In this document: positions 1-44,200 of the stretch, one piece after another
Layout of the letters: each line of letters opens with the position of its first letter
Numbering within the stretch: position 1 is the stretch's first letter
Assembly (NCBI RefSeq): GCF_032062105.1
Contig: NW_026930368.1
Location: forward strand, 248,001 to 312,000
DNA from: Saccostrea cucullata
Lineage: Eukaryota
Length of the DNA: 64,000 nt
Reading direction: 5' to 3'
The notes under the pieces: generated by a model
Database searches by the model: none
The model's input: only the letters and a program-made list of their open reading frames with translations
What the model was told of the DNA's origin: nothing
Position numbers and translations under genes: made by a program

Positions 1-1
1 G

Positions 2-817
2 TCCAGTTGAACACGCGGGGTCGTATAAAGTCAAGTCCTCCTTCCCAAGCGATTTAAGGAATTGCACGGAGTATTCTCGGAGGAAAACCTCCCCCTCTCC
101 AAGCTGAAGAGCAAGAGTCTCGTCGATTTCCCATCCTTCATCCGGGCAATGAATCTCCTCCTTGTAAGCCGTCTGTAGGACGGGGTAGGGGAATATAATC
201 TCCATGTGTTTAATGCGGTTCTGAACAATGTCGTGCATGATGTATTTTTTCTCGCCTGGTGTGAGCTCCTTGTAGTACACCACGAAGCCGTCGTCTTGTA
301 CGCGCTGATCAAACATTAGGCCGAGGATCATACTGGCTCTGATGTGACTACAGTGCAGCTCGCGGATTTTGCTAGCAATCCATTGATGCGACAAAATACG
401 CCGTCCTACTAGGGCACGCAACATTCCATTATGTTGCTGCCAACTCTTCAGCAGGAAAACGCTCTGAGGTAGTTCGTCCCATTTCTCAAAATAAATTTTG
501 GGAGGTCTCTGGCTAATTGCGTCCCAGTCAATTCCGTCAGAGGCCTTGACGTCATCGCTAATGTGACGCTCCTCATACGTCTCAACTTCTTTTAGAATCA
601 GCTCTATATTTCTCTTATCGTGTTTGTCCGTTGTGTCTTTGATTAACTCCTTGAATTTAGTCTTTGATTCTTCCCACTTTCCGTCAGTGATCAGTTTCTG
701 AGCTGCATAAAGTCTCTTACGAGTTTCGGGGTTGTTGACGTCACGGAATATCCCGTCAAAATCAAACGTGCTGTGTCCCTCTGTCGCGGTGGGCAGGCTT
801 CCTTCTTTAGCACTCAT
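2..817 (-). CDS. Isonocardicin synthase (Nat)-like SAM-dependent 3-amino-3-carboxypropyltransferase / class I SAM-dependent transferase; 3' end lies beyond the window start
   Basis: Hand translation from ATG at 817 gives 272 stop-free codons: MSAKEGSLPTATEGHSTFDFDG...MLRALVGRRILSHQWIASKIRELHCSHIRASMILGLMFDQ...IFPYPVLQTAYKEEIHCPDEGWEIDETLALQLGEGEVFLREYSVQFLKSLGKEDLTLYDPACSTG. The final YDPACSTG is a SAM-binding motif I. RRILS..IAS, HCPDEGW.. and YDPACSTG match Nocardia Nat as I recall it. No introns; visibly more GC-rich than the flanks. Confidence 0.8.
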   Translation of the reverse strand, partial: MSAKEGSLPTATEGHSTFDFDGIFRDVNNPETRKRLYAAQKLITDGKWEESKTKFKELIKDTTDKHDKRNIELILKEVETYEERHISDDVKASDGIDWDAISQRPPKIYFEKWDELPQSVFLLKSWQQHNGMLRALVGRRILSHQWIASKIRELHCSHIRASMILGLMFDQRVQDDGFVVYYKELTPGEKKYIMHDIVQNRIKHMEIIFPYPVLQTAYKEEIHCPDEGWEIDETLALQLGEGEVFLREYSVQFLKSLGKEDLTLYDPACSTG

Positions 818-1564
818 TGTTGGTTGTGATTTTGTAGGATACTGAGGCAACACAAAGTGTGGACTTGAGCAGCATTGACTGTATGTAGGAAAAGGCGTCC
901 TAACACGCAAAATAGGGAACGTCCTATATTCCACTGATAAAACTAAGTTTAAAAACCGTTTGATAACAGTATCTAAGACAAGGCGTGTGGTCTTTATCGA
1001 TGTTTACTAGTATGTTGTTGAAATCTATTCATAAATCATTAAAAAAAATTGTTGATTGTTTTGGAGAGATAAAAAAAAAAAAAACTGTCCTTTTTGACAG
1101 ATTTTATGTTATAAAATAAACTCTGGAATTTGAATACTTGATTGCAGAGTTTCTTTGATAAAATAAAATCTATCAGAAAGGACAAAACTAAAATGAGGTA
1201 TGAATTCAGTCAGTAAGAAATGCGAAAAAAAACCCAATGTCATATAAAGCTTAGTGTGACGAGTACACTTTCTCAAATGTATCAAACTTTATTTTTAAAG
1301 TGCAGGAAAAAAACCTCATTTTCATTACAAAACCGTACTATACCTCATGTTTACATGATAGCGATGTTAGGGACATACATATTTTTAGTTCATCGTTCCG
1401 AAAATAATCTGGTTAACAATTTCTTGGATTTTCTTAAAATCGGTAACTATGGAAAATAATGATTTTTACTTGCTTATTGAGATGGCAACGGTTTCACTTC
1501 ATTGGGAAATTAGAAAAAAAACCCTTTTCACCCATTTTTTCTTCAAATTTTCTATAACAAAAAT

Positions 1565-6811: not shown

Positions 6812-9252
6812 CACAGGAGTTCGCGTACCTATCAATTATACCGAAATTTTTATTAAACAAGCTAATTCAGAGAATTTGTGTCCCCCGCTTAGGGAAAAAG
6901 TAAATAATGCAGAGTTCGGGGGAGGGGGGAGTCGGATCCCCCTGACTGAATTTGTAGAATAGTTAAATGTATAGATGTATACTGAAGCAAATAAAATATG
7001 GCAATATGGATATAAAGATTTGATTACTTATTCTTTATTATGTGTATAGAAGATTCTTTTTATATGGAATATTTAACACACTGTAATGATGATCTTATGA
7101 GTTTGTACAAGCCACACCTCATAAATTTTTCATTTCACATGCTGAATATTATTATTTAATTAAAAAAAGTATTTCGGGAAAAAAAAAGATAACGAATCGT
7201 CTGGGAATCGAATCCGGGACATCTCACATGTGAAGCGAGAGACATACCACTAGACCACGGGGCCGCTCTACAATGAGGCAAATGATATGCAATCATGAAG
7301 TCACATACATGTATATATTCATGTTCGGTATTATCAAAATTTTACACAATCCACGGTGTTTGTTTTATTTAGCCTTAATTAAACAGTTCTAATAGATGTA
7401 CTAAGAACATAACGTCCGCCGAGAACCTGTTTTATACGCAATAACTCTCCTCATGCCCCTGTGCTAAAAATAGCGACATGTAATACTATAAATACTGATA
7501 AAACAAACGGGGCGGTGCACTTTGAAAGGGGTGAGAGAGGTCCTAGGGAGTTTTGATAGAGAATTACATTGCATAAGCTCAAAATCTTCTTGAAATATCG
7601 CCCGGAAATGATAGTGTTACACACAGAGAGAATGTATAAATTTACGACCTTGAACTTTGACCTTTTGACCTCAAAATCAATAGGGGTCTTCATTAGGCTA
7701 CAGGGAGTTGTTATGTAAAATTTCATTGCAATAGCTCAAATGGTTCGTGAGATATCGTGTGGAAACGAAAGTGTTATAGCAGACAGAATTTGCTTATTTA
7801 TGACCTTGACCTTTGACCTTTTGACCTCAAAATCAATAGGGGTCTTCTATAGTCCATAGGGAGTTGCTATGCTAAATTTCATTGCAAAAGCTCAAAGGGT
7901 TCTGGAGATATCGTGTGGAAACGAAAGCGTTACAGACAGACAGAAAGACGGACGGACAGACGGATAAACCCAAATTAATATCCCCCACTTTTCAAGCGGA
8001 GGACAATAAAAACAAGCTAATTCAGAGAATTCGTGTCCCCCGCTTAGGGAAAAAGTCGGCTCCCCCAGACTGAATTTGTAGAATTATTAAATGTATACAT
8101 GTATACTGAAGGAAATAAAATACATGTATGTCAGTATGCATATAAAGATTTGATTGCTTATTCTTTATTATGTGTAATAGAAGATTTTTTTATATGGAAT
8201 ATTTATCACACTGTAATGATGATTTTATAACCTCATAAATTTTTCATTTCACATGCTGAATACTTTCATTTAGTAAAAAAAAAAAAGTATTTAAAAAAAA
8301 AAAAGAGAGAGAGGTTCGACCGTGATTTGATCCCGGGACCTCTCACATTTGAAGCGAGAGACATAACCACTAGACCACGGAGTCGCTTTACATGGAAAGA
8401 AGTATATGCAGAACTGACGTCACATACATGTATATATTCATGTTTTCATGTTCGGTATTCTAAAAATTTTACACAATCCATGGTGTTTGATTTATTTAGC
8501 CTTTATTAAACAGTTCTAATAGATGTAATAAGAACATAAAGTCCGCCGAGAACCTGTTTTATACGCAATAACTCTCCTCATGCCCCTGAGCTAAAAATAG
8601 CGACATGTAATACTATAAATACTAATAAAACAAACGGGGCGGGGCACTTTGAGAGGGGCTAGAGACGTCCTAGGGAGTTTTGGTATAAAATTACATTGCA
8701 TAAGCTCAAAATCTTCTTGAAATATCGCCCGGAAATGATAGTGTTACACACAGACAGAATGTATAAATTTACGACCTTGAACTTTGACCTTTTGACCTCA
8801 AAATCAATAGGGGTCTTCTTTAGGCCACAGGGAGTTGTTATGTAAAATTTCATTGCAATAGCTCAAATGGTTCTAGGGATATCGTGTGGAAACGAAAGTG
8901 TTTTAACAGACAGAATTTGCTTATTTATGACCTTGACCTTTGATCTTTTGACCTCAAAATCAATAGGGGTCTTCTTTAGTCCATAGGGAGTTGCTTTGCT
9001 AAATTTCATTGCAAAAGCTCAAAGGGTTCTCGAGATATCGTGTGGAAACGAAAGCGTTACAGACAGACAGAAAGACGGACGGACGGACGGACGGACGGAC
9101 GGACAAACCCAAATTAATATCCCCCACTTTTCAAGCGGGGGACAAAAAAAACGTAATGCGTATAATAATATAGTGTTATTATTATAGGTATTACGTATCT
9201 TTTTTATTTACCGAAAATTTCGGCAAAATTGATAGGTACGCGAACTCCTGTG
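6812..9252. mobile_element. TIR element (P/hAT-like) hosting two tandem Helentron-type inserts
   Basis: Perfect 26-bp TIR CACAGGAGTTCGCGTACCTATCAATT starting at 6812 and ending at 9252; flanks TTTCTTTA / GTTCTTTA (7/8 match, 8-bp TSD). Confidence 0.8.
6856..9144 (+). mobile_element. Two head-to-tail Helentron-associated (HINE/Pearl-like) elements, units 6856-8005 and 8011-9144
   Basis: Each unit starts AAACAAGCTAATTCAGAGAATT, has internal tandem monomers (TTTGACCTCAAAATCAATAGGGGTCTTC), a GACA/GACG microsatellite and a 3' hairpin-like TCCCCCACTTTTCAAGCGG.GGACAA. Confidence 0.8.
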
Positions 9253-9845: not shown

Positions 9846-12452
9846 ATGGCACATGCTAGTTTTACTTCTGAGGATGACCAGTTGCGAGATAAATGCTTTT
9901 TGTCCCACTTTGCAGAAATTTTATCAAAGGTGAACAACGATGGGAATAAAGTGTTTATAGATGCATTGTCACTCATGGAGTTTACTTGTCTAAAACTACA
10001 TCATGATGAAATAGCAGGTGGACTATATTCTGAGTGTCACTATGTAGGTTCAGTGGGGGAAGGCATCTCAGGTTTAGATATTTTTTCAAACAATTCAGAT
10101 ATAGACATAATGTTTGTGATGAAATCAGTACATGTAGTTGAAAGACGTCCGATAAAAACAAATAAAAAATGCGAACAACTTCTGAAGATGATCGACGCTG
10201 ATACGACACCTGGTTATGTCAAACTGAAAATACTAGAAAATGAAATTGATGAAAACAATGCGATGAAAGAAGACGAATTCCTTCCTAACTCGATTGTACA
10301 AAAAACTTTCCAAGCATATGGCAATGCATCGAACGCTGGACTACTGAGCCGCATGGTTGAACTTCTTGGAGATAAAATGACCATCAATTGGTTTGTTAAC
10401 GGTCCTTCTTGTTCAACAAATTTGGAAACAGGCAATCGAAACATACTGACAAATAGATTAGTATGGATCGAGTCTGTAGATTGTGTTATAGGATTAAAAT
10501 GTAACGAATGGCCTGAAATAGCTGACGAATGGATCGAAAGAAACAGAGAGTACAACTGGCCTTCAGGAGACCTCATAGAAAAAGCAGTTTCTTTGGGATG
10601 CTATGTTGTCCCAATTGGTGGTCGTCAGAGTATAACTCAGGACCTCGAATGGCGCATATCTTTTGTTCTAGCAGAAAGACTTCTGGTTCGAAATATGAAA
10701 TACATGCAACTTTTCGTATATTCCTTGTTAAAATCTATCAGAAAGGAGATATTTGGGGAATTTTCCATTATAATATCGTCCTACATTATTAAAACGGTTG
10801 TTTTTTGGGTAATGGAAGAAAACGACGCACCATCCTGGAAACCAGAGCATGTGCTTAACTATGTCCAAATCTGTTTTCAAAAATTGTTGGAATTTTTAGA
10901 AGACGATTTTTGTCCTAATTACTTCATGAGAAAATGTAATTTGTTCCATTTGAAATATTCTGATAATGAAAAAATACGTTAATTCGTTTAGTCAAAGAAT
11001 TTATAACGTCTCCAAATTTTTTGAGATCGTTGTGTTCTCTTAATGCTATAGAAAACGTTCGAAGAAACATATACGGTTTATGTCGTATACCGGTAATATT
11101 TAGTACTTATATGAACTATGTAAAAGATATCCGCGATACTTTGGTTTTTAGATATATTTCAGAAGATGTAATTAATCGTTTTGCAGACAGCATGGTTAAT
11201 CGTTCAGAGGAGTCGGATGCTAATATTGCTATTAAATCCATAACTTTGGTACTCAAAGCTATGAAAAAGAACAAAGAAAATTTCTCACCCCTTCTGAAAG
11301 AGACAATCACAGGACATTTTTCTTGCTTGCAGATTCGCTCTGTGTGCGCTGCGACTCATCACAATAAGAAGGCTTTGTCTGAGCCATTTACACTTCAACA
11401 GCGATTTGATGTTGTTCATTATTTGATTGAAAATTCGAAGTTGAAGGTAGAAAGTCTTACTTTTGGAGAAGTTGCACAACTAGCCCATGTATTTTTTTCG
11501 TTTGGATGTATCAGGAATTGTTTGGATATATTAACGCCAGCGCTGGATAATATGATAAAAACACCACAAACTAGAGGTACTGTGAGCGATGAGCTCACTA
11601 AATGATACCCCCCGCCTCCCCTATGGTTATAAGTGGTGAAAAAGTCCATGTTTTCCTGTGGCCGGGAAACCCAAAATATGTGTCGGATCAAAAAGTAAAA
11701 TAGGAGGTGCACAATGGCAATATGTAATAAAGATTCTGTGAAAGTTTCATCAAATTTCATTCAGTGGTATGAGAGGAGTTACGGATAAGAGATGGGTACC
11801 CCAAAGCGTAACAGACGGACGGACAGACAGACAGACGGACGGACGGACGGACGGACGTACAGACGGACGGACGGACGGACGGACGGAATTAACGATTACT
11901 ATATACCCTCCCGCTTTTCAAGCGGGGGGTATAATAAGAATAGATAACTTCATGTCAATATTTGAAATCACAGCCTCATCTTTATTCACTTCTGAAGGAA
12001 ACGTGGCTCTAACTTCGCCATATCGCCCAATGCTACTTATACAACTCTATCCATTTGAATTTCAAATGCTTACTAAGGACATTCAAATTGAAATGCTGGC
12101 ATTGAAAATACAGCAAGACTTTTACTCAGAGGTGTTGAAACCTGGATTTACATTTAAAGTTACCGTGGACCCCGTGGTTTACGCTTGTTATTTGAAATTC
12201 AAATGTCTTCGCAATTTAGGAGACAACATTGGATCGTGCGTTGCCCTAAACCTGTTTGGAGAATTTGTACTCCAAAAAGTATCACATCGGTACATTGCTC
12301 TGAGTCTTCTCGGATGCTGCTTAAATGAAAATGGGTATACTGATAAAGCCTTTAAAATGTTTGCTCGGTCTTTCCGCGAGAATAAAGGAAGATTAGCAAC
12401 ACTTTACCATGTGGCAATAATGCTCAACTGTGAATTTGCTACATACATGTAA
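9846..12452 (+). pseudogene. cGAS-like receptor (cGLR, Mab-21 nucleotidyltransferase) copy 1, disrupted; 9846-10982 still encodes a 378-aa catalytic core
   Basis: Motifs VGSVGEG...SDIDIMF, VDCVIGLKC..WP..A.EW..R.R...WPS, EWRISFVLAE, SSYIIKT, CPNYF...NLF. A 1-nt deletion in the A-run at 10969-10974 and a transposon at 11570-11933 interrupt the C-terminal part. Acceptor TTTCAG ends at 9820. Confidence 0.9.
11570..11933 (+). mobile_element. Helentron-associated element inserted in the cGLR copy 1 coding sequence
   Basis: ACTAGAGGTACTGTGAGC...(GACG/GACA)n...CCCGCTTTTCAAGCGGGGGGTATA. Removing it restores IKTPQ-IRIDNFM, collinear with copy 3 LKSTSHIKVDNVM. Confidence 0.9.
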
Positions 12453-15203: not shown

Positions 15204-16417
15204 CATGTTTAAAACTACACTATGATCAATCAACAGGTGGGCCATATTCTGAGTGTCACTTTGTAGGTTCCGGAGGAGAAGGCATTGCAGGTTTAGATAT
15301 TTTTTCAAACAACTCAGATCTAGACATTATGTTTGTGATGAAATCAGTGCATGTAGTTCAAAGACATCCAATGAAAGCAAATGAAAACTGCGAACAACTT
15401 CTCGAGATGAACGATGTTGATACAATGCTAGGGAAGGAAACTAATAAAAGCTCTGCGATAAAAAAAGATGAATTCCTTCTCAACTCATTTATACGAAACG
15501 CTTTCAAAGCATATAGCACCGCATCTAATGCCAGACTCCAAAGCCGCATGTCCGAACTTCTCGGAAATAAAATGAACATAAGCTGGTTTGACAATGGTCC
15601 TTCTTGTTCAACAAATTTGGAAGCGGGGAAACCAAAATATACTGACAAATAGAACGATATGGATCAAATCTTTGGACTTTGTTATAGGATTAAAATGTAA
15701 TGAATGGCCTGAAATAGCTGACGAATGGATTGAAAGAAACAGAGAGTACAACTGGCCCTCAGGAGATCTCATAGAAAAAGCAGTTGCCTTAGGATGCTAT
15801 GTAGTGCCAATCGGTGGTCGTCAAAGCATTACTGAAGACCTCGAGTGGCGCATATCTTTTGTTCTAGCAGAAAGACTTCTGGTTCGAAATATGAACTGTA
15901 TGCAACTTTTCGTGTATTCCTTGTTAAAATCTATCAGAAATGAGATATTTGGGGAATTTTCCAGTATAATATCGTCCTACATTATTAAAACGGTTGTTTT
16001 TTGGGTAATGGAAGAAAGCGGTGTACCATCCTGGAAACCAGAGCATGTGCTTCACTATGTCCAAATCTGTTTTCAAAAATTATTGGAATTTTTAGAAGAT
16101 GATTTTTGCCCAAATTACTTTATGAGAAGGTTACCATGGACCCCGTGGTATACGCTTGTTATATGCAATTCAAATGTCATCGCATTTTAGGAGACAACAT
16201 AGGATCATGCGTTGCCCTAAGACTGTTTGGAGAATTTGTACTCAGAAAAGTATCACATCGGTACATTGCTCTGAGTCTTCTTTGGTGCTGCTTAAATGAA
16301 AATGGATACCCGGAAGAAGCCGTTAAAATGTTTGCTCGATCTTTCCGCGAGAAGAAAGAAAGATTAGCAACTCTTTACCATTTGGCAATAATGCTCAACC
16401 GTGAATTTGCTAAATAG
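15204..16417 (+). pseudogene. cGLR copy 2 pseudogene (5' truncated, frameshifted, internally deleted)
   Basis: TCLKLHYDQSTGGPYSECHFVGSGGEGIAGLDIFSNNSDLDIMFV...; frameshift at ~15625; at ~16128 the sequence jumps from CPNYFMR to VTMDPVVY, losing the middle ~0.85 kb present in copy 3. Confidence 0.9.
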
Positions 16418-19530: not shown

Positions 19531-21782
19531 ATGTCAAATACTAAACCAACAACAATGGAATGTGATACACCCAAGGATACATTTTTATCCCACTTAGCTA
19601 AATTCTTATCCGAGGTGAACAAAAATGGGACTAAAATACACATAGACGCAATGTCACTTATAGAGTTTACATTTATGAAAATACACCATGATCAATTCCC
19701 AAGGGAAATATTTTCTGAGTGTCACGTCGTGGGTTCAGCTGGAGAAGGCATAACAGGTTTAGATATTTTTACAAACAATTCCATATATAGATGCCATGCT
19801 TGTGATGAAGACAATGACTGTGATTGAAAGACATCCAGGAACACCAAATGAAAAATGCAAACTACTTTTAAGGATGAATAACACTGATACAATTCCTGGT
19901 TATGTTAAACTGAAATACTAAAAACTGAAACTGGTGAAAATACTAGTAATAGGAAGGCTGAAGATGAATTCCTTCCTAACACACTATTTCGAGACTCTTT
20001 TCAAAGGCATGGAAACCCATGTAATGCCAAGCTTCTAAGCCAAATGATGGAACTTCTTGGAATTCCTGGAGATAGAATAAAAGTTAACTACTTTGTCAAT
20101 GGTCCATCTTGTTCAGCGAATGTTGAAACAAAAGATCGAAATATACTAACGAGAAAATTAGTATGGATGGAGTCTGTAGACTCTGTTATAGGACTAAAAT
20201 GTAACGAATGGCCTGAAATAGCTGAAGAATGGATTGAAAGAAGCAGAGAGTACAACTGGCCTTCAGGAGACCTCATAGAAAAAGCAATCTCTTTAGGATG
20301 CTATGTGGTCCCTATCGGTGGTCGTCAAAGTATTTCGAAAGACTTCGAATGGTGCATATCTTTTGTTCTAGCAGAAAGACTTCTGATTCGAAATATGAAT
20401 TCTATTCAACGTTTCATTTATTCTGTTCTAAAATCGATCAGGAAGGAGATATTTGGGGAGTTTTCCGTTATAATTTCATCTTACATAATTAAAACAATTA
20501 TACTTTGGGTAATGGAAGAAAACGATACGTCCTCTCTTCAACCGAAGAATGTAATAGAATATGTCCAAGAATGTTTTCAAAAATTGTTGGAATTCTTAAA
20601 AGACGATTTTTGTCCAAATTACTTTATGAGAAAATGTAATTTGTTCCATCTAAAATATTCTGAAAATGAGAAAAGTGACCTTAGTAGTTTAGTAAGAGAT
20701 TTTGTATTGTCTCCAAATTTTCCGGAAATCTTGTGTTTTTTACAACCAATAGGAAATCTTCGACGTAGCCTATGCAGCGTATGTCAATTATCCGGACTAA
20801 CTGGTAGCATTTTTAATTTTGGAAGAGAACTTTTCGACACTTTACTATTTAAATATCAATTAGAAGAACCAATCAATCGTTTTGTAGACAGCATCGTTAA
20901 TGGTTCAGAAGAGTCTGATGCTAATGTTGCTGTTAAATCAATTAATGTGATATTGGAAACTCTGAAAGCAAACAGGGATAATTTTTCACCCCTTCTGCAG
21001 GAGACACTAACTGGAGTTTTGTCTTGCATGCAGATCCGCGCTGTATGCGCCGCATCTTTTCATAAGATGCAGACTTCATCTGAGCCTTTTTCACTTGAAG
21101 AAAGATTTAATGTTGTTAATTATTTAATTAAAAGTGCGAACTTGAAGGTAGAAAATCTGAGTGTCAGTGAAGTTGCACAGCTAGCCCATGTATTCTTTTC
21201 ATTTGGATGTATTCAAGACTGTTTGCATCTGTTTATGTTGACGCTGGATAGTTTAAAATCAACATCTCATATCAAAGTGGACAATGTTATGTCAATATTT
21301 GACGTTGCAGCCTCATTTTTATTCCATTTTCAAGAAAATAAAGCTGAAAATTGGCTGTGTCGACCAGTAATACTTACTAAACTTTACCCTTTTGAATTTC
21401 CTATGCTGACAAAGGATATTCAGGTCGAAATGCAGGCACTGAAAATACAACAAAATGTTTATTCAGAATTGTTAAAACGTAAATTAACTTTCAAAGTCAC
21501 ACTTGATCCTCTTGTTTACATTTGTTACATGAAATTCAAATGTCATCGCTTGTTAGAAGACAACATAGGGTCATGTTTTACCTTAAAAGAGTTTGGAGAT
21601 ATCGTACACAAAAAAGTATCTCATCGGTCTATTGCGTTGAGTCTTCTTGGGTGCTGCTTAAAAGAAAATGGACGTGTGGAAGAAGCCATTTTAATGTTTT
21701 ATCGGTCTTTCTTGAGGACAAGGAGAGATTGGCAACACTCTACCATGTGGCAATAATGCTTAAAGATGAATTCGCTAAATAA
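19531..21782 (+). pseudogene. cGLR copy 3, full length but with three frameshifts
   Basis: ATG directly follows the acceptor TTTCAG; VGSAGEGITGLDIF. A +1 shift at ~19782 falls inside the S-D-x-D motif; -1 shifts at ~19915 and ~21711. A 570-aa ORF (20044-21756) remains. Confidence 0.9.
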
Positions 21783-32742: not shown

Positions 32743-33381
32743 TCAGTTCATTCCTTCTTGGTCAGGAGGGGGAATAACTTTTGCAGTTGATCGCAGTCCA
32801 CTGGCTATTGCAGGTGTGTCATATTTCTCATACATTTCTTGTAACAATGAAGTCGGCAGATCCAGTTTGTTGATGTTGTTTTTCGGCAGATGCTTTTTAA
32901 AAAACCTTATACAGGAGTCCTTTAATGAGTAAACTGGAAAAAAACCAAAGCACCTTATTACATTCACGATATACTTGGGAAAACAATTAAATATTGATCT
33001 GAATTTGGAGAGAATATAAATACACTGTATATACATACTGGGAATTGTAATATTGACAACTTTTCGCACTGGTTTTATCGGCCACTGGCTTGGTACCCAT
33101 CCTGTAGTAGGCTCATACACAGATTTCAGGTCAACAACCAGTCTCTCACCAGATTCCACATCCAAGAAAATCCAAGGATGCCCTACGTAAGTGTTCACAT
33201 CCACAAATTCATAGGCTTGCAAAGTCTTGTATTTCACTCTTGCACCTTCATAGTTTAACCAAATAATGTCAACGCCTCTTTCTGTTCTGTTTTTAAATCG
33301 GACAAGTGAGCAAACAATGGATTTTTTGGACTTCCTGACTTCTACCCCTTGGTCCATGGAACCCCCAGGGGCTCCAGCCAT
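32743..33381 (-). CDS. VHL: von Hippel-Lindau protein (E3 ligase substrate receptor), ~177 aa, 2 coding exons
   Basis: Exons 33039-33381 and 32743-32933. Beta domain VRFKNRTERGVDIIWLNYEGARVKY...NTYVGHPWIF; BC box YSLKDSC; LDLPTSL. Upstream acceptor at 33492; probable first exon ending at 35398. Confidence 0.92.
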   Translation of the reverse strand: MAGAPGGSMDQGVEVRKSKKSIVCSLVRFKNRTERGVDIIWLNYEGARVKYKTLQAYEFVDVNTYVGHPWIFLDVESGERLVVDLKSVYEPTTGWVPSQWPIKPVRKVVNITIPSMYIQCIYILSKFRSIFNCFPKYIVNVIRCFGFFPVYSLKDSCIRFFKKHLPKNNINKLDLPTSLLQEMYEKYDTPAIASGLRSTAKVIPPPDQEGMN

Positions 33382-34245
33382 CTTCAAGTTTTCTAAATGA
33401 CTATTTTGGTCATTTTGGAATTTGTAATGATACCAAAAACAGTCCTTAAATGTTAGTTGTTCTAGGTCACTCTCATATAATAAGTTCTTCACTAAAAAAA
33501 AAAAGAAGAATTAGCATGATTAGTATCTTTATATAAATAATAAGAAATGAAAGCTAAAAGATACATGTAAAATAAGAAACACCAGTCATATATTCTAATT
33601 ATTCTTATTCTAAGACTGAACTAGTTTTAATACCCAAAAATATATAGTTTTTGGTATGCTAGCAGTCTGTTCGTCTATTAATCTGTTTGTCAGATCTACA
33701 AAAACTTCAACTTTGCACAAAACTTTTGAATTTAATGTTTGGTGCAAAGGCTTTTATATTTCAATTGTATTGTGAATATTTCTTGTGGCACAACCATTCT
33801 TTGAGTGCCAACATTTCTGACCTCTTGTCCTTGATCTTGATCTTCTTTTGCAAAATTTTACCAAACTTTAACTTTAATCTTGGCCATTACTTTTAAATAA
33901 CATTGCTAAGGCTTTTATATTTGGAAAGTATATTCCATGCAACTAGAGCTTTCTTTGGATTCCAACATTTTTTGCCTTGACCTTGGAGTTTGACCTAAAT
34001 TTAAACAACTGAAGTCTTTCATCTCGGCCCTAACTTTTAATTGATCGCCATTTGGTTTTAGGACTCTCATTTATAGCAATTATTTCTGATCATGTGTCCT
34101 TGACCTTTGACCTACATTTTGTGAAAATCTTTTCTATAAGTTATACACATATACATGTATGATGTAGAATAACTCTTGAATGGTTGCTGGAGCAAGGTCT
34201 TTTAACAGGTTGGGACCAATCGCCAAAATGGGATATAATAGTCCA

Positions 34246-41285: not shown

Positions 41286-44200
41286 ATGCCGGTAAAGAAG
41301 AAGACATGTGAACTCTTGTTGATGCTCACCATAGGCCTAACTTGTTTGGGTTAGTTTGATTTAAAATATATTTTATCTAAATCAATGAAACGGATTGAAC
41401 AACAGGCATGAATGCCTAAGATCGAGTCGATACGATATATTCATATATCATGGTGAGCTTGAGATAAAAGATACTACCGAGTCTGAAACATATTTCATAT
41501 TTGGATATTTTACTTGAAAAAGACGTTAATGGTAATATAACAACCAAACTCTATGATAAACGTGATGACTTAATGTAACTTTTCTATCGTCAACTTCTCT
41601 TACTTATGCAGCAATATACCTTCATCACCTGCATACGGAGTTTATGTATCTCTGTTGATTCGATATGCAAGAGCATGCTCTTCGTATGAACAATTTTTAA
41701 AACGAGGTAAATTATTGACAAACAAGTTAATGAAACAAACATTTCAGCAGTCTCGTCTCAAGTCATCATATTTCGTAAATTCTATGGTCGATCCAATGGC
41801 CTTTTCAGCAAATACAATTAATCATTGAGTCAAATGCTGACTGACATTTTTCATGCTAATTGTTAGTCCATTATTTATACATTGAATTGACGACGGATTT
41901 TTCCGTTATTTCCCGATCATGACAAGGAGCACACGGCGGGTGTGACCGGTCGGCAGGAGATGCTCACTCCTCTAGGTCATCTGATCCCACTTCTGATGTA
42001 TTGAAGGTCCGTGTTTGCTCTGCTCCTATTTTGTATTGTTTTATTGACTTTGATCTTGAATACTGTTCGTTATCTCAATATGGTAATCATACAAGACTAT
42101 TGAACCCTAGTTTGCTTTGAACCTATTTTAGTTTATGTCTTTCTTCTTCATTTTCTACAGACATTTCCAAATTGCTACATTCATTTGAAGTTTTCATAAA
42201 AAAACTATACGGTGTCTTTACAGATAATTCTCTTACATGTCCTTGTTTTTCCTCTCTTTTCAATTATAGTCTTACTGGACACATCATTACTCATGATAAA
42301 CAATGAAAAAATGATGAACTAATAAAATAAAATCAAGGTGTGAAAATCACGGAGCAAACGTCTTTCAAATGCTGAGAGAACATTTTTACTGTAATGAACT
42401 ATACTTACGATAAAGAGTAGGCCAAATTGTGGAAAGGGGGGGGGGGGTTGGCACTTTATTTAGAATGGATAAAGCATTTTTTTGAGAATTGCAAATTTCT
42501 TTTAACATCAAAATGATTCAGCATCAGCTCGAAGGAAGTTCTTTGATCTTTCAGGGAAGGAGATTCCAGATAATCAGGGAAAGGAATTCATCATTGGATT
42601 CATGGAGGCCGACGAGGCTTGGTATGGAGATATATCAGATATACCATTGAAGTTGTTTATTACGACAGCGTCTGAAGTTCCTGTAAGTGTTAATGTTTCT
42701 GCTCCTATGTCCAAGACTCTTTACCATGGTGACCGATTTACCGTTAAAAGGGGGACCATAAAGCAGATATCGATTCCAAAGTCCCTTAGAGTAGAGGGAA
42801 CATGGCGTGCAAAGAAAGCAATTCACATTGTCTCGTCTGATGAAATTGTGGTGTTTGGAATAAACCAAGCGAGGCTTTCTACTGATGGCTTTCTTGGAAT
42901 GCCTTTGGATGTATTGGGAACTAAATATTTTGTTCCTTCCTTCTATTCAACTGCTCAAAATTTTTACCAGTCGGCCATTCTCATAGCTGGGACACAAGAC
43001 AACACCAAGTTGAACATCAAACTGCCAATGGAACATAACATTAATATACATCTTGAAGGAAAAAGTTATAATCAGGGTGACTGGATCAACATGACAGTCA
43101 ATAAATATGATACCTTACAGCTTCTTTGCCACGCCGATTTAACAGGTACGGTTGTTTTATCTTCAGAGAAAGTATCTGTTTTCGGAGGATCTACCATAAC
43201 TTCTGTTGGAGTAGGAACTTCACGGGATCACATCGAAGAACAAATACCACCTGTCAATGTTTGGGGGAAATCATTTGCAATAAATCCATTTCCCGATACC
43301 AATCCAAACGTTATCCGATTTTTGGCAAGTGAAGATGACACTTTTGTCAACATTGATGGTAAACCATCTGTTCACATGTCGGCTGGAAATTTTCATGAGT
43401 TGGAAATGGACAGTTTCTCTTTAATTACTTCCAACAAGCCAGTTTTATCTGTGCAGTATGTTCCCAGTGGAACATGTAAAGATTATGTAGTTCCAGGCTG
43501 CCACAAGGGCGATCCAGCTATGACTTTAATTCCCCCAATAGAACAAAGTAACACATTCTACTCGTTTTTAACACCGCTTTCATCTAAAAATTCTAACTAT
43601 AAAAACATATTCATGTTCTTTATAGAAGATTCCTACGAAAGTGGAATATTACTTGACAATAAACACATCAAAAGGAGAGCCTTCCACAATGTAGTGCACA
43701 GACACAATCTCTCTGTTGGTTATATAGACATTCTACCTGGTGGTCATACCATAGAACATTCTTCCAAAAATGTACCCTTTGGAGGGATACTTTATGGCGG
43801 TATCCAGTATGAATCGTATGCTTTCCCTGTTGGTCAAAGGTTTGCCACGATAAATAAGGTAGTTCTAATGATTAGTAAAACTTGATTTAAAAAAAAAATT
43901 GTTACTGTCTGTATTGAAAGTCCCACAGATGACTTTATTGAGTAAATAAGTTAACAATACAAAGAATAAATGCTCATCATATGATGAATATGCATATATG
44001 AATCTTCATTTCACCACATTTTCACTGCTTTTAGAAAGAATGTCGTCCTACTGTAATGACCATTGGAGATGGTATAGATAATGATTGCGATGGACAAGTA
44101 GATGAGGAGATTTGTAATGATCTACAAGGTAAATAGGTGAAGTTCTAAAGTATTAGATGAAACATTTATTAATTACTTAATCATTACCAAGACATTTGCT

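Follow-up and report, generated by a model that had tools for sequence, protein, structure and literature searches.

The stretch of DNA analysed here (the window: 64,000 nucleotides, G000:C12505:248001-312000, from contig NW_026930368.1 of the oyster Saccostrea cucullata) carries at its left edge a gene that, judged by its sequence, probably encodes a functional, animal-encoded 3-amino-3-carboxypropyl (ACP) transferase of the Nat family, dependent on S-adenosylmethionine (SAM). This aminocarboxypropyltransferase (ACT) gene belongs to one of two old molluscan clades (clade A), and is probably a paralogue standing outside the gene cluster of the bursatellin/oxazinin (bur-ox) pathway. The original prediction of a horizontally acquired ACT in a bivalve was essentially right, but the finding had already been published in 2025 (PMC11869996). 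What appears to be new is that the molluscs keep two old ACT paralogues, and that the unclustered copy is the more conserved and the more widely annotated of the two.

The molluscan bur-ox locus contains the nonribosomal peptide synthetase (NRPS) FmtATR, a Nat-homologous ACT, a bacteria-like cytochrome P450 (P450), together with a pair of flavin-containing monooxygenases (FMOs) (Venugopalan and Schmidt, J Am Chem Soc 2025, PMC11869996). With SAM, the recombinant ACT of Mytilus californianus (McalACT) acts on N-formyl-tyrosinol and on its analogues to give phenolic homoserine ethers (+101 Da), a step that belongs to the bur-ox pathway, and an ancient horizontal transfer before the molluscan classes has been proposed for these genes, which are present across the bivalves and in some gastropods (PMC11869996). 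The same study notes that such genes already carry the NCBI annotation “isonocardicin synthase-like”, as the original prediction had allowed; its further statement that no function had been assigned was overtaken by the characterisation of the family in 2025 as the bursatellin/oxazinin ACT (PMC11869996).

The gene, its protein and its transcripts

In the window, the gene is seen as a stop-free frame of 272 codons on the minus strand (positions 2-817), with its ATG at 815-817 and the N-terminal sequence MSAKEGSLPTATEGH. The frame is absent from the list of open reading frames (ORFs), as had been remarked, and had been called hidden for this reason, although it is simply truncated by the window's left edge, which does not coincide with an end of the contig. 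The window lies in the interior of a contig of 408,325 bases, in a genome of 1.17 Gb, and the proposed leftward extension, made with the left flank (L010, C12505:242001-250000), completes an ORF of 402 codons (L010 5609..6817, minus strand), which closes 391 bases to the left of the window, at G000:C12505:247609. The ORF is intact as a single exon and requires no intron, as first described, and uninterrupted single exons of ~1.2 kb are likewise called for its counterparts in Pinctada, Mizuhopecten, Dreissena, and Potamilus, which are orthologues. The raised GC content was confirmed, being 0.46-0.49 across the gene versus 0.28-0.33 in the flanks. The GC content at third codon positions (GC3) is 0.505, compared with 0.29-0.39 in six adjoining animal ORFs, and the correlation of codon usage with the neighbouring ORFs is low (r = 0.10). 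The parts of the gene are as follows:

1..817, minus strand: initial 272 codons and one further base of the clade-A ACT gene, identified by the ORF, the Nat match, the fold, and the invariant residues
818..928, minus strand: probable 5' untranslated region; the RNA-library contigs end ~110 nt upstream of the ATG (L010 6906-6928, equal to window 906-928)
608..817, minus strand: N-terminal extension of ~70 amino acids (aa), with helices predicted by the model at 30-44, 48-61, and 65-84
212..607, minus strand: Nat-specific cap domain, roughly aa 71-202; the Nat alignment starts at aa 153, bacterial homologues align from aa 70-110, and the structural match covers 305 columns against the whole Nat chain
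1..211, minus strand: window part of the Rossmann/SAM-binding domain, with the motif-I variant YDPACSTG at the left edge; Methyltransf_25/11 match at aa 260-360, and residues D266, C269, S270, and G272
left of the window, minus strand: remainder of the Rossmann domain, with the GQD, RFxNSE, and GHTP motifs

The cap covers a portion of Nat's N-terminal strand/helix domain, on the side of the substrate, and generic methyltransferases lack it. The N-terminal extension is common to both of the molluscan clades and to the rotifers, and the bacterial proteins of ~335 aa do not have it.

Sequence and predicted model both mark the window protein as clearly homologous to Nat (isonocardicin synthase). 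In the search of the PDB sequences, Nat (8zhu_A) was the sole strong match (E 5.6e-36, query aa 153-401 against chain 83-325), with the next match at 0.02. An AlphaFold2 model, built on an alignment of 77 family sequences, reached a predicted local distance difference test (pLDDT) score of 92.9 and a predicted template modelling (pTM) score of 0.91. When this model was searched with Foldseek, four Nat chains (8zhu, 8zhv) came out on top (E 6e-29 to 4e-28, template modelling (TM) score of 0.87-0.90 on the target, ~305 columns), followed by the ordinary methyltransferases from 9e-10 on, which matched the Rossmann half only. Pfam returned only the generic models Methyltransf_25, 11, and 31, weakly (E 1e-5 to 1e-10) and over aa 260-360, and NCBIfam only weak UbiE/BioC-like matches.

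Sixteen alignment columns are invariant among the 77 family sequences, and all of these are kept in the window protein. They include D266, C269, S270, and G272, from a D-P-A-C-S-T-G variant that stands in place of the usual glycine-rich motif I, together with G289 (in GQD), R328, N331, and G361 and T363, the last two from GHTP. The family motifs are also visible in Nat in the PDB alignment, and the motifs named in the original prediction (RRILS..IAS, HCPDEGW, and YDPACSTG) each occur in the window protein, inside the region aligned to Nat, so that the likeness to Nat that it had proposed is borne out by sequence, fold, and motifs.

Part of the ACT gene was found in 24 public runs, four of which are recorded as RNA, while most of the others were guessed to be RNA. 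When four runs were mapped onto L010 5000-7600, the RNA-library contigs tiled the ORF and extended ~110 nt upstream of the ATG and into the 3' tail, with no joints inside the ORF; further upstream, none of the four runs has any depth at L010 7001-7087 and 7262-7522, and runs X7 and X12 have some at 7088-7261. The coverage of the ORF, which answers the suggested check on RNA, fits an unspliced mRNA. These contigs differ from the window by ~3-4% (~96-97% identical), and 21 of the 23 listed differences in the ORF fall at codon position 3 (binomial p about 1e-8), with one amino-acid change in total. This predominance of third-position differences shows that the ACT gene is under purifying selection. 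A cluster of 307 members, comprising proteins of 402 aa from Logan contigs of 1.5-8 kb, from a related species and ~88% identical, points the same way on both expression and selection.

Bacterial origin and the two molluscan clades

The family is small, since 1.8 billion representatives yielded 198 clusters at E <= 1e-3, and outside the animals it is bacterial, with relatives in genuine bacterial contigs from many phyla. The named matches come from the Bacillota, Actinomycetota (many of them Streptomyces), Pseudomonadota, Bacteroidota (Cardinium, Amoebophilaceae), Chlamydiota, Bdellovibrionota, Cyanobacteriota, and candidate phyla, and many sequences have no taxon assignment. The animal members have a patchy distribution, being found only in the molluscs and the bdelloid rotifers. 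Two trees were built, one of 175 sequences and one of 68 sequences that includes the named bacteria; the latter was made by a quick method, and its row L051 (Xenorhabdus, branch length 10) was mis-extracted and is disregarded. In both trees, the two molluscan clades and the rotifers are nested inside the bacterial diversity. The larger tree groups the molluscs with the bdelloid rotifers (Rotaria socialis) with a support of 94, while the position of the rotifers is unresolved in the smaller one, and the nearest non-animal group of the larger tree consists of contigs with flagellin, chemotaxis, and two-component genes. This nesting and the restricted animal distribution support an ancient acquisition from bacteria, as had been proposed. 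The raised GC3 is also found in the clade-B paralogue, and is unlikely to be a signature of the donor after so long.

Many of the bacteria that carry the gene live inside the cells of invertebrates and protists, as symbionts or pathogens, among them L048, L071, and L059 (Cardinium hertigii, Amoebophilaceae), L065 (Chlamydiae), L076, L080 (Rickettsiella), and L074 (Legionellaceae). Lineages of this type are plausible donors, although none is adjacent to the animal clade in the tree. In a metagenome-assembled genome of the Silvanigrellales (L078:230-4146), a gene of 962 aa with an adenylation-(thiolation)-reductase (A-(T)-R) architecture, in which Pfam identifies AMP-binding and NAD_binding_4, overlaps the ACT gene where the latter starts. 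Two further bacterial proteins of ~1200 aa (P0144, P0149) are A-T-R-ACT fusions, and a third (P0143) is a fusion of thiolation and thioesterase domains with ACT (T-TE-ACT). These arrangements suggest that an NRPS-like module and the ACT could have been transferred together.

Both trees recover the two molluscan clades, which are sisters with a support of 93-94. Clade A (support 99) contains the window gene and the sequences of Pinctada, Mizuhopecten (KP79_PYT04290), Dreissena, Potamilus, and the gastropod Batillaria; Patella falls just outside it in the larger tree (support 89), and inside it, with Batillaria, in the smaller one. A protein of Mytilus coruscus (P0028), which is 61-64% identical to the window protein, was too short for the trees. 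The clade-A gene of this species (L024:10001-11211) is split over several frames and its annotated product has 253 aa; the frame breaks could be an assembly error or the mark of a decaying copy. Clade B (support 98-99) contains the oyster paralogues, Mizuhopecten KP79_PYT01546, and many further sequences. Given that clade A includes both bivalves and gastropods, and that Mizuhopecten and the oyster carry both clades, the duplication appears, on this sequence evidence, to predate the split between the bivalves and the gastropods.

The clade-B ACT paralogues of the same genome are 38-39% identical to the window gene, and those on C22977 lie among B-box/TRIM-like ORFs. The further ACT copies of the oyster are:

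C22977:121013-122167: clade-B paralogue, an intact single exon
C17120:4156-5310: clade-B paralogue, an intact single exon, on a 6-kb contig, possibly a haplotig
C22977:50854-51647: clade-B copy broken by a stop
C19136:61862-62032: short ACT fragment

Between the two clades, 80 shared positions are conserved at >=90%, including all of the SAM-motif residues, and 11 differences are fixed; four of these lie in the N-terminal extension and the rest are scattered, such as A236D and Q273V, the latter beside motif I. Clade A is slightly more conserved, with a mean pairwise identity of 0.59, compared with 0.56 in clade B.

The two clades also differ in their surroundings. A P450, FMO, or NRPS gene lies within 10 kb at three of five clade-B loci, compared with none of six clade-A loci, which were those of the window genome (over 80 kb), Pinctada, Mizuhopecten, M. 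coruscus, Dreissena, and Potamilus. The ACT genes adjacent to a P450 or FMO (P0046, P0032, P0039) all belong to clade B, while the window gene belongs to clade A. The clade-B neighbours are:

Mizuhopecten: P450 ~350 bp away
L039: P450 of several exons, carrying the haem motif, head to head with the ACT gene at a distance of ~1.2 kb
L027: FMO-like genes 5-8 kb away

A PDB search with the clade-B-adjacent P450 gave its best matches among the eukaryote-type and BM3-type P450s. As a P450 lies close to the ACT in the published bur-ox locus (PMC11869996), clade B is taken, from its gene neighbourhood, to be the bur-ox ACT group, and the window gene to be an unclustered paralogue. In the oyster, an NRPS-like gene with introns (G000:C13191:321018-326473) has an adenylation exon at ~321.0 kb, together with exons for thioester-reductase/NAD_binding_4 at 325.1-326.5 kb; this candidate oyster FmtATR is unlinked to either ACT clade in the assembly.

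Proposed chemistry and alternative readings

The conserved residues give no hint of lost catalysis, so the chemistry of Nat and McalACT is expected here too, and the window gene would probably be an uncharacterised paralogue with this same activity. As in these enzymes, SAM would be bound in such a way that the nucleophile of the acceptor attacks the C-gamma of its methionine part, yielding methylthioadenosine and a homoserine-type ether (a +101 Da ACP adduct). The nucleophile would most likely be the phenolic hydroxyl of a small molecule derived from tyrosine. Clade A would have arisen by duplication of the anciently transferred bacterial gene, before the bivalve/gastropod split, and may act outside the bur-ox cluster either on a different acceptor, or as a second, unlinked ACT for the same bursatellin/oxazinin-type chemistry. 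The more specific proposal, that clade A is a mollusc-wide and better conserved second ACT, independent of the bur-ox pathway, with a different acceptor and with further ACP-modified metabolites (homoserine-ether or homoserine-amine) as its products, is advanced only tentatively, at somewhat less than an even chance.

The window gene might instead be the direct orthologue of McalACT, acting on N-formyl-tyrosinol in the bur-ox pathway, with clade B as a side branch. The published account describes one ACT per species, with no paralogues in its main text (PMC11869996), and in most of the annotated genomes (Pinctada, Dreissena, Potamilus, Batillaria, and Mytilus coruscus) the copy present is that of clade A. 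The Patella protein also groups with clade A, and the patellogastropods are reported to have the ACT but not the NRPS (PMC11869996), while animal clusters can extend beyond the 10 kb that were viewed. Against this stand the neighbourhoods, which lack P450, FMO, and NRPS genes within 10 kb at all six of the clade-A loci, among them that of Mytilus coruscus and that of the window gene, viewed over 80 kb, whereas the clade-B genes adjoin a P450 in Mizuhopecten and L039, and FMO-like genes in L027, matching the ACT-near P450 of the published locus. Direct orthology is, on balance, unlikely. Far less probable still is an ordinary class-I SAM methyltransferase, even though the generic methyltransferase models are all that Pfam can offer and the NCBIfam matches are of the UbiE/BioC type, given that these weak matches are confined to aa 260-360, whereas the match to Nat spans 250 residues, and the fold match to Nat surpasses that to any methyltransferase by 19 orders of magnitude. 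The D-P-A-C-S-T-G variant is, moreover, invariant where such enzymes have their glycine-rich motif, and both of the characterised members of the family, Nat and McalACT, transfer ACP (PMC11869996).

The bacterial character of the gene, which is intronless, richer in GC and GC3 than its neighbours, and divergent in codon usage, might also point to contaminating bacterial DNA, a chimeric assembly, or a pseudogene in decay. The gene is located, however, in the interior of the 408-kb contig rather than at a chimeric or contaminant end, as had been feared, flanked on either side by animal genes that have introns and by animal repeats; its XAB2/SYF1 neighbour is found beside the Pinctada gene too, and orthologues occur in many molluscs. 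The frame is intact, its changes are mostly at third positions, and it is present in RNA libraries. The chance of any such artefact is negligible, and this explanation is ruled out by the contig context, the synteny with Pinctada, the orthologues, and the intact, expressed frame.

A number of points nevertheless weigh against the reading of the window gene as a functional, unclustered ACP transferase of ancient bacterial origin. It is homology that points to the transfer of ACP rather than of a methyl group. The placement of McalACT in clade B follows from the neighbourhood counts of 3/5 versus 0/6, which are only suggestive, and the oyster clade-B copies are themselves not visibly clustered with bur-ox partners, with one lying 5 kb from a contig end and another on the 6-kb contig. 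The deep nodes of the trees are weak, too much so to fix a root, to single out a donor, or to tell one transfer from two (to the molluscs and to the rotifers). The RNA evidence consists of assembled contigs, which probably come from another individual or a sister taxon, and a carry-over of DNA in the RNA libraries is formally possible.

Natural-product-type enzymes of bacterial origin that are encoded by animals are rare, and the ACP transferases are themselves a rare class of enzyme, useful for putting reactive handles on phenols. If clade A has its own substrate, a further family of metabolites would be present in food bivalves, and if it serves the bur-ox pathway, this pathway would be only partly clustered, and the published picture of the cluster would need to be amended.

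Genomic setting and comparison with known systems

The XAB2/SYF1 exons, which encode HAT repeats and have introns between them, lie to the left of the ACT gene. They belong to a many-exon pre-mRNA splicing factor gene (L010 79-3982, L009 8660-9973), arranged tail to tail with the ACT gene. The orthologue of Pinctada imbricata (L011), a single exon that is 76% identical, also adjoins the Syf1 gene, and the Syf1 exons of the oyster and P. imbricata match exon by exon, with 70-93% identity. To the right of the ACT gene, the window contains Mab-21/cGAS-like, VHL-like, and three IgGFc-binding-domain ORFs. The ACT gene is integrated in the host genome and vertically inherited by it, judging from the animal genes and repeats that flank it on both sides and from the XAB2/SYF1 neighbour kept in Pinctada. 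The eukaryotic repeat reported next to the gene is present, with at least 60 matches in the genome:

1086..1185, no strand assigned: interspersed repeat of ~100 bp upstream of the ACT gene, resembling a miniature inverted-repeat transposable element; 65 genomic matches at 70-93% identity, with both strands matching at the same loci

The long ORFs of the 64-kb window contain no NRPS, P450, or FMO domains of the bur-ox type, and no P450 or FMO homology was found in the 16 kb to the left of the window. The genome-wide scans with PF00551, PF07993, PF00550, TIGR01746, TIGR01733, PF00743, and PF00067, which cover the formyltransferase, thioester-reductase, carrier, NRPS adenylation, FMO, and P450 domains, gave no match on C12505, with the P450 and adenylation-domain scans scoring only part of their candidates.

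Other genes of the window form series of their own. The Mab-21/cGAS-like ORFs (window 9846-10982, 15588-16190, and 20044-21756) look like a local expansion of cGLR-type nucleotidyltransferase genes. A full IgGFc_binding domain is found in each of three tandem single-exon ORFs (window 42602-43885, 52140-53441, and 61539-62867), of 427-442 aa each, at a spacing of ~9.5 kb and with E about 1e-54 to 1e-57, and a VHL beta domain (E 1e-13) in a single-exon ORF of 249 aa (window 32743-33492, minus strand).

A number of other enzymes also use SAM as an ACP donor, including nicotianamine synthase/CntL, BtaA, TYW2, Tsr3, and MccD, with folds and sequences that are unrelated or distantly related; none of these was among the PDB sequence or Foldseek matches of the window protein. 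The closest characterised bacterial system is Nat of Nocardia uniformis (8zhu, 8zhv), to which the oyster protein is homologous over aa 153-401, with ~30% identity, and with which it shares the two-domain fold and the motifs D-x-A-C-S-T-G, GQD, R-x-x-N, and GHTP. Nat is, however, a bacterial protein of 326 aa that acts on nocardicin precursors and is encoded in a beta-lactam cluster (Reeve et al. 1998, as cited in PMC11869996), whereas the oyster protein has ~70-95 extra N-terminal residues, and its gene lies in an animal genome, outside any visible cluster.

The bur-ox core of FmtATR and ACT is mirrored by the bacterial A-T-R modules that are fused or translationally coupled to an ACT, while the window gene stands alone. 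The proteins P0144 and P0149, and that of the Silvanigrellales genome (L078), have an ACT domain like that of the window gene, but are bacterial and known from their sequences. The most similar known system is McalACT, which is of the same family and length class (~400 aa) as the window protein, with the same conserved motifs, the same molluscan N-terminal extension, and a single-exon, bacteria-like gene, and which presumably carries out the same transfer of ACP from SAM to a nucleophile. The window gene differs from it in belonging to clade A, being ~38-45% identical to the P450/FMO-adjacent members of clade B, the presumed home of McalACT, and it differs from the bur-ox ACT in standing without an adjacent NRPS, P450, or FMO.

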